Sequence record: LC727701.1
Reading direction: 5' to 3' (one strand)
DNA length: 64,000 nucleotides
The notes under the pieces are model-generated. The model saw only the letters and a list, made by a program, of their open reading frames with translations. It had not been told where the DNA came from and did not search any database. This document shows, in pieces, positions 25,871-39,009 of this stretch. Made by a program: the position numbers and the translations under genes. Numbering within the stretch: the first letter of the stretch is position 1; every line of letters starts with the position of its first letter.

Positions 25871-27787
25871 ATGTCTAATGAACAACAGGTTACAAATAAG
25901 AAAAAGATTAAGGGCATTGAAGCCAAACATATTACTTATTGTACTGATCAATTTGGTAAGTTTACAGATGCGCATTTCGTTAAAGAACGAATTCATTTTG
26001 AAGATGGTACAACTGCAAATAATTTAAGGATGTGGGAAAACTACCAGCGTCCTTTTTGGATTACCTCAAAAGGAATGCGTAACCATAAAGAAAAGAAAGA
26101 TTACGAATATGAGCGTAACTTAGTTAAATACATGTCAACTCAAATTGACATGAAACGTAAGATTAGTAAAATCCTAGGTGACTATTCGGCTAGATCTCTT
26201 CGTCAACTAGCGCGTAGTCCTTACCTATATGGCAGTGATGTTAGTTCAACCTGTTATCTGAAGCATGATTATCAAGAACGTTATCCTGGTCTAATCTCTC
26301 TAAACACTGTTGCTGGCGGTGACATCGAAACCAACGTTTATGAAGCTGAGAACGATGGTCAGATTATCTGTATGTCAGTTACACATAAGAACAAAGCTTT
26401 CTTAGCCTATTTAAAACGATGGGTTAGTGATATTGAAGATCCAGTGAAAGAGACATTAGAACAAGCACAAAAAGAAGAGGTATTATCACATCTAATTAAA
26501 GAACGTGGTCTAGATATTGAAGTAATGGTTGTTGAAACACCAGTAGATATTATTATTGAATGTTTTAAACGACTACATACCTGGAAACCAGATTTCTTCG
26601 CATTCTGGAATATTAGCTTCGACATTGGTAGAATCTTAAAAACATTAGAACACTATGGTGTTAATCCAGCTGATGTTTTTTCTGATCCATCGGTACCTAA
26701 GAATTATAGGTATTTCCATTTTAAGATTGATGAACCTATGACCACCACTGCATCTGGGGTCACTAAATCTAAAGGACCGGAGGATCAATGGCATTGGATT
26801 ACAGCACCCTCTAGTTTTCAATGTATCGATTCTATGTCAACTTATCGAGTAACTCGATTAGCTAAAGGACGTGATCCTAACTATCGGTTAGAGTCTATTC
26901 TTAGAAAAGAACTAAACATCGATAAATCCACGACCATTAAAAATGATAAGGACTTAGAAGATTTTATTGAAGGTTTTAATAAACAACTAGTTGACCGACC
27001 AGGCGGCGTTATTACTAAATATATTAAAAATGTAGGTAGTAATGAATGGGTACCGGTGGATGATTTTATATTAAATGATAACTTTACCTATGGTGATTCT
27101 ATTAGATATGTAATGGAATTTGGTAAGTTAACCTTTAAAGAAACTGCACATCTTGGTGGTATCGATTGGCACCGTGAGATGCAGACTAAGCATAAAATCA
27201 AATATGGTCTTTATAACATCATCGACTCCATTCGACTAGAACAACTTGATGAACAAGTAAATGACCTTGGTCGCTCTATAAGTCTATTCTCTAAGGCATC
27301 TGACTATAAGAACTTTAGTTCTAACCCAAAACGACTATGTGACGATATGCACTTCTGGTATTTGAATAGACCAGAGCCATGTGTCATTGGTTCAAGTTCA
27401 GATCAGATGGTGCATGAACTTGATCAATATGTTATTGGCCATAATGATTGGATTGTTACACTACCATCATACATGGCAGGTCCAAATGGATTGCAGTGTG
27501 TTAAAGATTTACCGAATTATAAAACCTTAATCTTCTGTCATATCGCCGACCTTGACATCGTGTCGACATATCCTAACGTTAGTCAGATTCTAAATATTGC
27601 ACGTGAAACATGTGTGATGGAATTCTCAATGATGGAAGGAATTAGTGAACACCATCGCCGTGAAGTTGGCGTAAACTTAACAGGTGGTAGGGTTAATGCT
27701 ATTGAAATCACACAGAAGATCATGGGTGCTCCTAAAATGGACACCCTGCTAGAGAAGTTTATTAATACCTATAAGAACCCAAAGTAA
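25871..27787 (+). CDS. Split family B DNA polymerase, N-terminal part with 3'-5' exonuclease and motif A (gp82)
   Basis: Exo motifs GDIET, FWNISFD, IDSM, YNIID; motif A DLDIVSTYP at the C-terminus; motifs B and C absent, as known for the split phiKZ PolB (gp82 + gp50). Confidence 0.85.
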   Translation: MSNEQQVTNKKKIKGIEAKHITYCTDQFGKFTDAHFVKERIHFEDGTTANNLRMWENYQRPFWITSKGMRNHKEKKDYEYERNLVKYMSTQIDMKRKISKILGDYSARSLRQLARSPYLYGSDVSSTCYLKHDYQERYPGLISLNTVAGGDIETNVYEAENDGQIICMSVTHKNKAFLAYLKRWVSDIEDPVKETLEQAQKEEVLSHLIKERGLDIEVMVVETPVDIIIECFKRLHTWKPDFFAFWNISFDIGRILKTLEHYGVNPADVFSDPSVPKNYRYFHFKIDEPMTTTASGVTKSKGPEDQWHWITAPSSFQCIDSMSTYRVTRLAKGRDPNYRLESILRKELNIDKSTTIKNDKDLEDFIEGFNKQLVDRPGGVITKYIKNVGSNEWVPVDDFILNDNFTYGDSIRYVMEFGKLTFKETAHLGGIDWHREMQTKHKIKYGLYNIIDSIRLEQLDEQVNDLGRSISLFSKASDYKNFSSNPKRLCDDMHFWYLNRPEPCVIGSSSDQMVHELDQYVIGHNDWIVTLPSYMAGPNGLQCVKDLPNYKTLIFCHIADLDIVSTYPNVSQILNIARETCVMEFSMMEGISEHHRREVGVNLTGGRVNAIEITQKIMGAPKMDTLLEKFINTYKNPK

Positions 27788-28155
27788 TATATCAGTGGAA
27801 GCGCCGAGGAGGATATGAATGTTCATCTGTTGGTGACAAAAGATTCTCGGCTCTTTACGCAAGGCTTCCTGATGGCAGAACAATTGAGGAAGCTTGGCAG
27901 TTAGATTGTAAAGGATATCGCATATACTCCAACCATTGGAAAGCTGGTAAAGGAAAACCACCACTAGACGGGTATAATCCCAAATATGATGATTATAAAA
28001 ATCTGTGGAAAGTATGGGCGGTATCTAATAAACATCTAATGGATGAATTGCGTCAGAATGCAAAAGAACATGATAACTATCTTTCTGATGTTTTTGCTTC
28101 TACTGATATTTCACAGGCACGTGCTCTAGCAGAACTACTTAATGAAGGATATTAA
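27787..28155 (+). CDS. Hidden 122-codon ORF with an ATA start, putatively NADAR/YbiA-like
   Basis: IYQWKRRGGYECSSVGDKRFSALYARLPDGRTIEEAWQLDCKG...ISQARALAELLNEGY*; ATA overlaps the gp82 TAA; absent from the ORF track. Confidence 0.65.
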   Translation: MYQWKRRGGYECSSVGDKRFSALYARLPDGRTIEEAWQLDCKGYRIYSNHWKAGKGKPPLDGYNPKYDDYKNLWKVWAVSNKHLMDELRQNAKEHDNYLSDVFASTDISQARALAELLNEGY

Positions 28156-28228
28156 AAAATGGAAGGTATTCCTAATTAAATATTATCAATTGATCATTAC
28201 TGCTAACATAAACTTCGACACATCATAA

Positions 28229-28252
28229 AACCCTCCCATTACGGGAGGGTTT
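28229..28252. terminator. Bidirectional terminator
   Basis: AACCCTCCC-ATTAC-GGGAGGGTT between convergent genes. Confidence 0.7.
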
Positions 28253-28258
28253 ATTTCG

Positions 28259-29773
28259 TTAACTAATTTGGTATTTTAAATTCTGATTACCGTTTAGAAC
28301 ATAAATCTTACCGTCATTATTAAACGTATTGGCAAAACCTGCATCCACTAAACCAGTTTCTAAATTACCTAAATTTATCCATCGTGCTAATCGTGGTTCA
28401 TAATACTTAATTGGTGCGTTATTTTGATTTTCACCAGCGATTACATAAAGTTCACCAGATGGGCGTATATTAATAGCTGCACCAAGAGGTATACCTGTAG
28501 TTATTGGTTTGGACCAATTATTGTTGGTTTGATTGTACGATATGATTCCAGTATTAACACCAGCACCAACCGTACCACCAATAACGCATACGCTATTATT
28601 ATAAATACTCACTGAATAATCTTGGGTATATTCCCCAGTATCATTAAATGCTGCACCACTGGTATATGTATCTGTAGTTGGATTGTACATTAATGTAAAT
28701 CCACGATTATTTGTTGCAGTTGTATCAGCTGCACCTAATATGTAGATTAACCCATTAAGACTAGTTCCACGTGCATACCGACAAGCTATCGTACCTGGTG
28801 ATTTTATTTCCCATGTATTAGTTGCAGGATCATAACACTGCATACCTTTAGTGAGTACACCATCTGTGGCACTTTCACCACCATAGAAATATACTTTACC
28901 ATTAAATGCAACAGCCGAGCATTGTTTAACTGCTATAGGCGTACCAGTTGGTTGTAATGTTGTTAACTTACCCGTGACTAAATTCAGTGTACGTAGAGCA
29001 GTATTAGCATTATTCTTACCACCGTAATAATAGACTAAGTTACCTATTTGGGCACCTGCTGCCATTTCGTTATCAGTTTCAAAATCAGTAAGTTTAATAA
29101 CATTATCTTTAACGAATGGATATGTACCACTAGCATAAACCACTGGACGCCAACCTTGGGTTGCAGCACCCGTTTCACTACTTGACGAGCTAGTTATATC
29201 AATCGCATAGTAGCCACGATAGAGCTGGTCATTAACTGGATCACTACCTGGGTCTCTTCCCCAGTTAGTAGTACCATCAGTGCTAATACCACCAGCGACC
29301 GCTTGGTTAATACCTAAGTCATTATCTGTAAATTTATAAGGCCAGTTAGCACCATTTAAATTAGATACGTGAACATTATAAAGTAACCTTTGCCATTCTG
29401 ATGTGGCACCAGCCATTGTTAATAAACCAAATTTATAAATGTTCCCCATAAATCTAACTTCATAGTCACCATTACGGAGTCCGGCATTATTAAGCCGTGA
29501 TTTTTGTATTGATTTACGAGCTGGTTTCTTTGGTATGTAACAAGTAACATTTTTATTAGAGAACTTTAACCATGGTTGTCCATCATTGATTACTGTTCCA
29601 AATGTCATATTAACTAATTTAGCTGCATCATCATAACCAAATAATTCTGAAGATGTTGTTTCACCATACAAACCTAATTCCCTTGTCCCAGCTATCAGTG
29701 TTTTAGGACCTGGATAAGGATCGGAATATATAGGCGTATTTGTTAGTCCAGAAGACAACAATAACTCAAACAT
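28259..29773 (-). CDS. Virion-associated protein gp83: phiKZ tail-associated paralog N-domain plus C-terminal Kelch beta-propeller
   Basis: N-terminal GPKTLIAG...GLYGE; six Kelch-like blades (VYYYGG, VYFYGG...YDPATNTW, IYILGA...YNPTTDTY, VCVIGG...YNQTNNNW, LYVIAG...YEPRLARW, IYVLNG). Confidence 0.75.
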   Translation of the reverse strand: MFELLLSSGLTNTPIYSDPYPGPKTLIAGTRELGLYGETTSSELFGYDDAAKLVNMTFGTVINDGQPWLKFSNKNVTCYIPKKPARKSIQKSRLNNAGLRNGDYEVRFMGNIYKFGLLTMAGATSEWQRLLYNVHVSNLNGANWPYKFTDNDLGINQAVAGGISTDGTTNWGRDPGSDPVNDQLYRGYYAIDITSSSSSETGAATQGWRPVVYASGTYPFVKDNVIKLTDFETDNEMAAGAQIGNLVYYYGGKNNANTALRTLNLVTGKLTTLQPTGTPIAVKQCSAVAFNGKVYFYGGESATDGVLTKGMQCYDPATNTWEIKSPGTIACRYARGTSLNGLIYILGAADTTATNNRGFTLMYNPTTDTYTSGAAFNDTGEYTQDYSVSIYNNSVCVIGGTVGAGVNTGIISYNQTNNNWSKPITTGIPLGAAINIRPSGELYVIAGENQNNAPIKYYEPRLARWINLGNLETGLVDAGFANTFNNDGKIYVLNGNQNLKYQIS

Positions 29774-38076: not shown

Positions 38077-39009
38077 GTGATGAGAATTATTGATTATGTA
38101 CGTGAACTCGCACCAGTTACTGAACGTCGTGAACTATTAAATCAAATCCGTTCATTACGTGAAGAATATGATGCAACTCTCGCACCAATTATTGACGATG
38201 TAGGTGAAGTATTTGGTAATATGCAACTTAAATCAGATTTAGGTATGCGGTTATCTACTGAACTACGGCGAGCGATTAGTTTTAATACTGAACCGATTAA
38301 ACTAGTACTGGATACTCTTTCAAATATTCGTGGTAGCTTTGATATGATCGAAAGCGAAATCCGGCGTTTATTTGCTATTCAGTTTACTAACTCTAATCTA
38401 ACCTTTGACCGTGCAAACATGTTACGTTTTGTTGATGGTCTTAGTTTCTATATTCGTTATGGCCGTAAACTACTACTAAATCTAATTGCACAAGAAGCAA
38501 TGAAATTAGGTAAGGCTACAGAATTAAAATCATCTCGTGCTGAGAAAGAATGGCTATACACTAATATGGCGCAATTCATTACTCTGTATCCAGCAATGAG
38601 TCTTAAGACTAATGAACTGAAACAACGCTTAAGTCGTGCATCTAGTGCTGAAGTCAATGAAGGTACTTATGATGTAGCTGTGAGTGCTCTCTCTATAGCT
38701 CAACGTGATCCACTTAACATGGATGGCTTCTCACCTCGTCAGAACCCGTTCGTGCTATTTGGCAAGTTCTTAGCTGAGTATCAGGTTGAACGTTTTAAAG
38801 AAGCTGAGCAAGAATTCCTTGCACTTCAACTACGTTTACAAGAAATGCGGGAAATGCAAAGTAATGGTAAAGTGGATGCACGCCTACAGAAGCTTATTAA
38901 AGAGTATGAAATTCGTATCTCTGATTATAACTATCGCCTAGGTATGATCCAAGATCGCGCATCTGAGTTCTTTGCTAACCATCGTGATCTACTATCTCTT
39001 GGTCATTAA
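38077..39009 (+). CDS. Virion head protein gp90
   Basis: Helical ~310-aa ORF; assigned by synteny. Confidence 0.7.
   Translation: MMRIIDYVRELAPVTERRELLNQIRSLREEYDATLAPIIDDVGEVFGNMQLKSDLGMRLSTELRRAISFNTEPIKLVLDTLSNIRGSFDMIESEIRRLFAIQFTNSNLTFDRANMLRFVDGLSFYIRYGRKLLLNLIAQEAMKLGKATELKSSRAEKEWLYTNMAQFITLYPAMSLKTNELKQRLSRASSAEVNEGTYDVAVSALSIAQRDPLNMDGFSPRQNPFVLFGKFLAEYQVERFKEAEQEFLALQLRLQEMREMQSNGKVDARLQKLIKEYEIRISDYNYRLGMIQDRASEFFANHRDLLSLGH

Follow-up and report, generated by a model that had tools for sequence, protein, structure and literature searches.

Several described systems come close to the arrangement reported here. In the tail assembly chaperone G/GT frameshift of phages, for which the lambda heptamer is G_GGA_AAG, a minor product with a C-terminal extension arises from a conserved -1 shift close to where the gene ends; relatives differ in the heptamer but share the arrangement. 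The -1 frameshift of dnaX on A_AAA_AAG yields two forms of a replication protein from one mRNA by slippage on an X_XXA_AAG motif; in some bacteria the tau protein is the shift product and carries extra domains, with the gamma stop placed directly after the shift site (PMC5009743). Here we describe a 122-codon frame, termed frame X (its product, domain X), in a stretch of 64,000 nucleotides from record LC727701.1, hereafter the window, which comes from a nucleus-forming, phiKZ-like (PA7/SL2 subgroup) Pseudomonas aeruginosa jumbo phage. Frame X lies behind the gene for the N-terminal subunit of a DNA polymerase (DNAP-N), and our best reading, which we hold with moderate confidence, is that a programmed -1 frameshift yields a fusion of the polymerase subunit with a NADAR-fold domain. 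This arrangement resembles the variant type of dnaX, in that a zero-frame stop follows the site and the longer form would carry an extra domain; it differs in the gene, the added domain and the organism, and the dnaX stimulators (an upstream Shine-Dalgarno sequence and a stem-loop 6 nucleotides (nt) downstream) are not evident here. The G/GT system differs from it in serving structural assembly and in involving another gene pair.

On the polymerase side, phiKZ has a split B-family polymerase, in which gp82 is the N-terminal subunit (DNAP-N) and bears the exonuclease; its partners are gp50 and the RNase H-clamp protein gp155 (preprint bioRxiv 10.64898/2026.09.30.755723); a cryo-electron microscopy structure of the phiKZ polymerase complex is reported in the preprint. 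On the side of the added domain, NADARs strip from guanine the ADP-ribose that is placed by DarT1, and AdfN of phage T4 thereby defeats DarTG1 (PMC11543638, PMC11125620, PMC11825919). The chimallivirus protein AdfM, a DarG2-like macrodomain, removes DNA ADP-ribose inside the phage nucleus and counters DarTG2 (PMC13309987), a precedent indicating that nucleus-forming phages still need de-ADP-ribosylation. AdfM is a macrodomain encoded by a separate gene, with an activity shown experimentally, whereas domain X has a NADAR-like fold, is tied to a polymerase and is assigned its function by analogy. Replicase polyproteins of RNA viruses contain embedded NADAR or macro domains (PMC9503650), and there too an ADP-ribose-processing domain is physically joined to a viral polymerase; those replicases, however, belong to animal RNA viruses and are joined by polyprotein synthesis, not by a frameshift onto a DNA polymerase subunit.

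The junction between the polymerase gene and frame X

Over positions 27400-28400 many Phikzvirus records match the window at 100% identity, whereas the value for phiKZ itself is 96.9%; related records label the homologue of its DNAP-N gene DNA polymerase or PHIKZ082. The gene is uninterrupted in the window, and we propose it as the zero frame of the recoding event (Table 1). Behind it, the initial annotation of the window had pointed to an overlooked frame whose only plausible start was an ATA overlapping the polymerase stop as TAATA, at a place where this genome normally uses TAATG. The frame indeed translates without an internal stop to 122 residues followed by TAA. The overlap was found as described, as was the absence of a canonical start before codon 85, with an in-frame stop upstream at 27772-27774 and no ATG, GTG or TTG until ATG 28039; the TAATG junctions cited for comparison at 39009, 50956 and 18353 are present. 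Two nearer ATG codons, at 27815 and 27819 behind the G-rich stretch GAGGAGGA, were tried as starts of X and rejected; they lie in other frames and open ORFs (open reading frames) of only 29 and 5 codons, respectively, and the G-rich stretch itself is Arg-Gly-Gly coding sequence of X.

Frame X is almost certainly a real, functional coding sequence under purifying selection. Its translation matches phrog_9995, a family of unknown function, from end to end (E 1.6e-55), and has matches in 502 proteins of a large protein collection and in 840 representative clusters. PhiPA3 gp084 and 201phi2-1 gp143 are annotated 122-residue proteins that share 88% and 69% identity with X, and their start codons, ATG and GTG, align with the ATA. 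In a 49-sequence alignment of the family 29 columns are invariant, including Y10, E11, S13, G16, D17, R19, S21, D29, G30, R31, E34, Q38, D40, K42, K55, D101 and Q110. Between the window and phiKZ, both of which have ATA, frame X differs by nine synonymous and one non-synonymous changes, a ratio of non-synonymous to synonymous rates (dN/dS) of ~0.03. A 61-base stretch across the junction finds a match in 47 phiKZ-like records, 42 of them at an identity of at least 99%, and the 3' terminal heptamer of the polymerase gene, its stop and the ATA are all retained in phiKZ and KEN49, both of which were read directly. RNA contigs from three studies of phiKZ-type infections cross the junction with no change or indel at 27778-27789, as does one near-identical DNA run. 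These contigs end at 28217-28254, that is, at the intrinsic terminator, and the polymerase gene and X are co-transcribed.

A base error at 27787 and a recently inactivated gene, two of the explanations that the initial annotation had offered for the ATA, are therefore excluded by the agreement of genomes, RNA contigs and DNA run at the junction and by the 9:1 ratio of substitutions. That X is an inactivated gene (ATG to ATA) or an artefact, unexpressed in the phiKZ group, would account for the missing canonical start and for the phiKZ-like records that annotate fragments only; it is extremely unlikely on the data above, and several deeply diverged lineages likewise lack a start while their ORFs are intact. 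Just as hard to credit is that only a C-terminal piece is translated from ATG 28039: it has an ATG and matches the annotation of phiKZ, in which PHIKZ082.1 is the sole annotated part of X, yet the 84 codons upstream are equally conserved and hold most of the invariant residues, and the confident single-domain structure model requires the whole length. Transcriptional slippage or editing was also considered and set aside, as the RNA contigs show no indels or changes at the junction; this is weak evidence, since contigs drop rare variants.

The polymerase gene ends in the heptamer C_CCA_AAG, directly followed by its stop codon. This heptamer is of the X_XXY_YYZ type in the zero frame, so that cognate re-pairing is possible in the -1 frame. 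Relative to the polymerase gene, frame X is in -1, and it is open over 27775-28155. Past the heptamer the -1 frame runs for 125 codons, and the zero frame ends after two. Nowhere else in the 64-kb window does such a heptamer combine an in-frame position within a long ORF with a -1 frame that extends far, and the TAA behind C_CCA_AAG possibly provides a "shifty stop" context. In Escherichia coli, C_CCA_AAG, G_GGA_AAG and A_AAA_AAG are the most efficient -1 motifs, and C_CCA_AAG reaches a shift of 54% with a pseudoknot (PMC4066793).

The same three heptamers recur in a junction sample composed of annotated relatives and 80 IMG/VR loci. Each of the loci that have X at -1 of an upstream DNAP-N (17/17) carries exactly one of them, in the polymerase frame and within the short interval in which frame X has already opened, and none of the other in-frame positions of the same polymerase genes does (0/9,434). 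C_CCA_AAG is found in phiKZ, PhiPA3, PS119XW, HPP-Temi, Phabio, 201phi2-1, Viktualia and the loci L016 and L018, whereas the whole motif is switched to G_GGA_AAG in L019. The remaining seven loci (L024, L025, L028, L048, L057, L066/Noxifer and L067) have A_AAA_AAG at six different distances before X (3 to 39 nt), with a polymerase frame that extends 6 to 81 nt beyond the first X codon. An immediate stop follows the heptamer also in PhiPA3, PS119XW, HPP-Temi, Phabio, Viktualia, L016, L018 and L019. The codon preceding C_CCA_AAG is always NNC, although the residue is Asn, Pro, Ser, Ala, Leu or Val. In six chimalliviruses without X behind DNAP-N (RAY, SPFM4, RP12, EL, pVp-JHP1101 and FBKp24), none of the three heptamers occurs at the end of the polymerase gene. 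Judged from these alignments, the heptamer is conserved and covaries beyond what the protein requires.

The codon at 27787 behaves differently. In the group with heptamer and immediate stop, the codon aligned to ATA is ATA, ATG, ACA, ACT, GTT or GTA (Ile, Met, Thr, Thr, Val and Val, respectively), and in the A_AAA_AAG group it is GTC, AGC, CCC, CAA or AAA. Many relatives that lack a start there have their first canonical start 22-40 codons inside the domain. As the position varies among ATA, ACA, ACT, GTT and GTA in relatives, the ATA probably behaves as an internal sense or linker codon (Ile, Met, Thr or Val) rather than as an initiation codon. The alternative, in line with the coupled start suggested in the initial annotation, is that X is a separate 122-residue protein made by termination-reinitiation at TAATA, the initiator tRNA reading a near-cognate codon. 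It draws on the use of TAATG elsewhere in the genome, on PhiPA3, which has TAATG at the homologous place, on 201phi2-1 and Viktualia, which have GTG, and on the many other phages that encode a free-standing family member of ~125 residues with Met at the aligned position. Close relatives with the same stop overlap nevertheless carry the unusable codons ACA, ACT, GTT or GTA, yet their ORFs are intact; moreover, no Shine-Dalgarno sequence lies upstream of the ATA, and an ATA start leaves both the conserved, covarying heptamers and the one-ORF fusions described below unexplained. We consider this alternative improbable. Since X lies in the -1 frame behind a conserved, covarying heptamer and its apparent start is variable, a frameshift replaces the ATA start as our reading of the junction. 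Initiation at ATA could still take place at a low level alongside frameshifting, and a free-standing X may also be made in PhiPA3, 201phi2-1 and Viktualia.

In some lineages the polymerase and X share a frame. The 698-residue protein P0229 (L096), the gene of which adjoins a major capsid gene of phiKZ type, is encoded by one ORF and consists of a DNAP-N homologue, a Gly-rich linker and X. In P0147 (L097) a single ORF likewise covers the end of the polymerase and X, with GAA CCC AAA GAC read in the register of X. In L080/L081 (2495-2503) only one TAG (GAT TAG CTA ACC) stands between X and the last polymerase exon, which share a frame, and no canonical start occurs until 11 codons into X; this TAG could be passed by stop readthrough or a suppressor tRNA, or the phage could be TAG-recoded. 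These one-ORF and TAG-separated lineages are independent indications that the polymerase-X fusion is the functional product. We consider it likely that X is expressed mainly as a -1 trans-frame fusion.

A number of observations weigh against -1 frameshifting at this junction. Without a stimulator the heptamers shift only ~0.3% in E. coli (PMC4066793), and no convincing classical stimulator, either a structure 5-9 nt downstream or an upstream Shine-Dalgarno-like sequence, was found around the heptamer. A conserved hairpin in the coding sequence of X is 17 nt away from the heptamer and weak in the window (-10.5 kcal/mol), and its role is uncertain; the same hairpin reaches -18 to -19 kcal/mol in PS119XW, HPP-Temi, PhiPA3, L016 and L018. 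A long-range fold from 5 nt after the heptamer is not significant (z -1.5 to -1.8), and no base pair in the downstream folds shows a compensatory change. In PhiPA3, 201phi2-1 and Viktualia the heptamer and a usable start (ATG or GTG) are both present. The preprint on the phiKZ polymerase structure does not mention a longer form of gp82, and a literature search on phiKZ proteomics and ribosome profiling returned no peptide or footprint data for the X region.

A further point on the same side is the Psa21-like group, which consists of Psa21, D6 and five metagenomic loci in four lineages (L021, L026, L030, L032, L035, L037 (Psa21) and L010 (D6)). Here X is in the +1 (-2) frame and overlaps the last 19-22 nt of the polymerase gene, with no -1 heptamer. 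The group shares GAA AAG AAG in the polymerase frame, which reads as a conserved G_AAA_AGA_AG in the X frame, ~10-25 nt before X. Its first X codon is GTG, TTG, CTG, ACG or CGG, some of which are able to initiate normally and others not. The arrangement may represent another recoding site or an ordinary overlapping start; -1 slippage does not explain it.

Fold and candidate active site of domain X

The AlphaFold2 model of domain X has a mean predicted local distance difference test (pLDDT) score of 96.6 and displays the alpha+beta fold of NADARs, with core helices flanked by small beta hairpins. In a fold search of the PDB independent of Foldseek, the top match is the NADAR of Geobacter lovleyi (8bat_A), with a Z score of 8.6 and 113 of the 122 residues aligned, followed by E. 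coli YbiA (2b3w, Z 7.2) and the Phytophthora NADAR with ADP-ribose (8bau, Z 6.9). A score gap separates these three from the next match at Z 3.5. The best match in the ESM Atlas, with a template modelling (TM) score of 0.73, belongs to a viral cluster in which 21% of the members carry PF22397 (NADAR-DarT1); a feature search of the ESM Atlas with X gave weak leads only. Going by the model, domain X very probably has the NADAR fold.

Other comparisons count against membership of the NADAR superfamily. Foldseek searches of the X model against PDB, AFDB and BFVD returned nothing significant with a name beyond its own family, and the NADAR matches in AFDB and BFVD were weak (E 0.5-10). Scanning X and 49 family members by hmmscan with E up to 1 detected no PF08719, PF22397 or PF08010 (Phage_30_3), and PF08719 and PF22397 had no match in any of the six frames of the nearest complete phage genome. 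In hhalign, the X profile aligned with T4 gp30.3 (AdfN) and with a 96-sequence YbiA profile, in local and global mode, at non-significant E values of 0.3-0.7, the profiles being of low diversity (number of effective sequences, Neff, 2.3-3.3). The alignments covered short stretches only, RFSAL..DGRT of X with DFSNF..DGKT of YbiA and LSD of X with LKH of gp30.3, which are those expected from the NADAR topology. Sequence searches of Pfam, PHROGs and PDB for a named family gave phrog_9995 plus chance matches only (uL3 and GAUT_1). Of the NADAR signature claimed in the initial annotation, the fold and the motif line-up found by hhalign thus hold, whereas significance and Pfam or HH membership do not; the comparisons with HH tools and Foldseek that it had called for were both non-significant, and it is the other fold search that ranks three NADARs first.

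Three invariant residues of X occupy positions that recall the active site of NADARs. In NADARs a Glu and a Lys on one helix, spaced E-x6-K, are essential or conserved, the essential pairs being E88/K95 in E. coli C7, E43/K50 in P. nicotianae and E36/K43 in AdfN (PMC11543638, PMC11825919). A charged residue on the last strand separates the subfamilies, with Glu in YbiA, Asp in the DarT1-linked proteins and His in gp30.3 (PMC11125620). In the X model, a helix at residues 33-41 bears the invariant E34, Q38 and K42, and the invariant D101 directly follows the strand 98-100. The equivalence of D101 is drawn from the non-significant hhalign alignment of LSD with LKH together with the last-strand rule (PMC11125620), and it is plausible that E34, K42 and D101 correspond to the catalytic residues of NADARs, a mapping made otherwise than by superposition.

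Compared with the NADAR superfamily as a whole (YbiA, the DarT1-linked BC4488-type antitoxins and T4 AdfN/gp30.3), domain X is alike in its alpha+beta fold, in an N-terminal F-S-x-x...D-G, in its occurrence in phages and, as candidate counterparts, in a helix with Glu, Gln and Lys and an acidic last-strand residue. It is unlike them in length (122 residues versus ~150-230), in the spacing E-x3-Q-x3-K versus E-x3-Q-x2-K, which places K42 one residue further from E34, and in having no significant match by HMM (hidden Markov model) or profile-profile comparison. In addition, X is appended to a DNA polymerase subunit and known from sequence and model, whereas NADARs stand alone or beside DarT1.

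Elsewhere domain X is fused to other domains. DUF4326 was detected in 4 of the 20 proteins scanned and RNase H in 2 of the 20, and other partners are YAcAr SLOG, DUF488-N3a and guanylate kinase; the domain is also embedded in giant proteins of 2,000-6,000 residues. DUF4326 and SLOG are reported partners of phage NADAR domains (PMC9503650, PMC7824862), and this context agrees with a NADAR assignment. Fold and context together support a NADAR-like nature for X; membership is not proven by sequence or by activity.

The domain might also be fused to the polymerase without being an ADP-ribose glycohydrolase, as a nucleic-acid-binding or otherwise catalytic accessory domain on a NADAR scaffold. Such a role would be compatible with the lack of a NADAR link at the sequence level, with a length some 30-100 residues below that of characterised NADARs, with the one-residue shift in E-Q-K spacing, and with the fusions to RNase H and polymerase, which suggest replication as much as ADP-ribose. 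The three top structural matches, on the other hand, are all NADARs with a clear gap below them, the invariant Glu, Lys and last-strand Asp appear to be placed as in NADARs, and the partners DUF4326 and SLOG are shared with phage NADARs. We regard this alternative as unlikely, though it deserves more weight than an ATA start.

The giant proteins with an X domain include P0136, P0142, P0152, P0155, P0162, P0174, P0233 and others, and the loci L041, L051, L055 and L059, where the domain sits in long ORFs that run off the fetched loci. A Pfam scan of four giants (P0136, P0142, P0155 and P0159) gave no match. They are reminiscent of "polyvalent" proteins, which are large, have many domains and occur in phages and conjugative elements.

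Features and annotation of the locus

The features of the junction region are collected in Table 1.

Table 1. Features of the polymerase-X region, in positions of the 64,000-nt window.
Feature	Position	Strand	Remark
DNA polymerase N-subunit gene (DNAP-N)	25871..27787	+	638 codons + TAA; phiKZ gp82 homologue; from the ORF list
Slippery heptamer C_CCA_AAG	27778..27784	+	CCA is polymerase codon 637, AAG codon 638; read from the sequence
Linker codons GTA ATA (Val-Ile), -1 frame	27784..27789	+	-1 translation ..EPKV-IYQWKRRGG..
Polymerase stop TAA	27785..27787	+	directly after the heptamer; last A is the first base of ATA 27787-27789 (TAATA)
Frame X, putative NADAR-fold domain (phrog_9995)	27787..28155	+	122 codons + TAA, no internal stop
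Hairpin	27802..27835	+	Gly-Gly codons paired with Ser-Ser codons of X; starts 17 nt behind the heptamer
29-codon ORF	27815..27904	+	other frame, inside X; annotated in some relatives; spurious call
Candidate active-site helix	27886..27912	+	E34 (27886-27888), Q38, K42 (27910-27912); E-x3-Q-x3-K, from the 49-sequence alignment
PHIKZ082.1	28039..28155	+	38 aa (amino acids); in-frame C-terminal fragment of X, not a separate gene
Invariant D101	28087..28089	+	LSD; candidate equivalent of the last-strand Asp/Glu/His of NADARs
Intrinsic terminator	28228..28252	+	closes the polymerase-X transcript

The hairpin is formed by pairing of GGAGGA (Gly-Gly) with UCCUCC (Ser-Ser), and the homologous stretch is found in L005, L012, L015, L016 and L018; Phabio has another pairing (CGACG/CGUCG) at this position. 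Downstream, the terminator sits between X and the convergent gene 28259-29773 (-), which encodes a 504-residue kelch-repeat protein (gp83 in phiKZ) that annotations call a structural head protein. At 28225, near the terminator, a nanopore record shows a loose end of poly(T/A). The phiKZ-type RNA contigs have one A fewer at 28154, in the A-run across the stop of X; the frame is unaffected, and the missing A is a strain difference.

Annotations of the locus in deposited records are fragments, or ORFs begun at internal ATGs and hence N-terminally truncated. Shortened versions of X are found in PS119XW, Psa21, Phabio, Noxifer, D6 and Viktualia, in addition to PHIKZ082.1 and the 29-residue out-of-frame ORF, and truncated annotations stand at L005:1968-2255, L007:773-1066, L008:767-1069, L009:758-1057, L010:767-1072 and L011:720-1069. 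The conserved N-terminal part of the domain is missing from all of them.

In several relatives the DNAP-N gene is broken at one site, after ..HIADLD and before VSTYPNVSQ... In PhiPA3 the annotation of DNAP-N covers the coding sequence only as far as 1659 and leaves out the remaining 3' part, which runs to 2239 (L004:1660-2239). In L080/L081:1727-2150 the gap in DNAP-N is filled with stops in the polymerase frame, and HPP-Temi has an HNH endonuclease gene at the interruption site (L012:1-390). The site looks like a hot spot for introns or homing endonucleases.

Predicted product and its significance

As we infer it, from the frameshift itself to the catalytic residues, the substrate and the localisation, expression of X would proceed as follows. 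A fraction of the ribosomes on the polymerase mRNA would slip back by one base at C_CCA_AAG, before the TAA, with the Pro tRNA re-pairing on CCC and the Lys tRNA on AAA; this would happen either in the course of translocation or with the stop codon already in the A site. Reading would then resume with GTA ATA TAT in the -1 frame, and the predicted long product consists of polymerase residues 1-638, one Val and the 122-residue domain, 761 residues in total. Unshifted ribosomes would stop at the TAA and release the ordinary 638-residue subunit. For an accessory repair activity, a shift of low efficiency would be fitting.

By analogy with NADARs, the appended domain might act as an N-glycosidase that cuts ADP-ribose, or a similar adduct, from DNA bases, and its link to the polymerase would bring it into the phage nucleus, to the replication fork or the single-stranded template. 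We put forward a role of X as a DNA de-ADP-ribosylase only tentatively, and the analogy falls short of making it probable. Still more speculative, and in our view rather unlikely as a complete account, is that chimalliviruses fit some of their replicative polymerase with a tethered mini-NADAR de-ADP-ribosylase through recoding, as an anti-DarT counter-defence in the nucleus; the proposed routes of recoding would be -1 frameshifting and, in some lineages, stop readthrough or gene fusion.

The components are of known kinds, namely -1 shifting as in dnaX or G/GT together with the NADAR fold, and their combination and its presence in phiKZ appear to be undescribed in the literature searched, which contains no mention of a frameshift in gp82. 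A literature search for PHIKZ082.1, PhiPA3 gp084 and a phiKZ frameshift gave nothing relevant, and a search with the letters of the heptamer returned primer lists only.

Frame X is missing from the annotation of phiKZ, the model nucleus-forming phage, and its recognition corrects gene calls in dozens of deposited genomes. The domain defines a widespread NADAR-fold family, with its 840 representative clusters and often inside giant proteins, which current profile libraries have missed. If the frameshift reading is true, the replicase would exist in two forms, one of which bears an enzyme-like domain, and polymerase purifications, knock-downs and structures would have to account for the longer form. 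The junction would then be a clean example, open to experimental test, of recoding that is conserved across a phage family and uses three heptamers interchangeably, and the fusion would be a new route for delivering a counter-defence enzyme into the phage nucleus.

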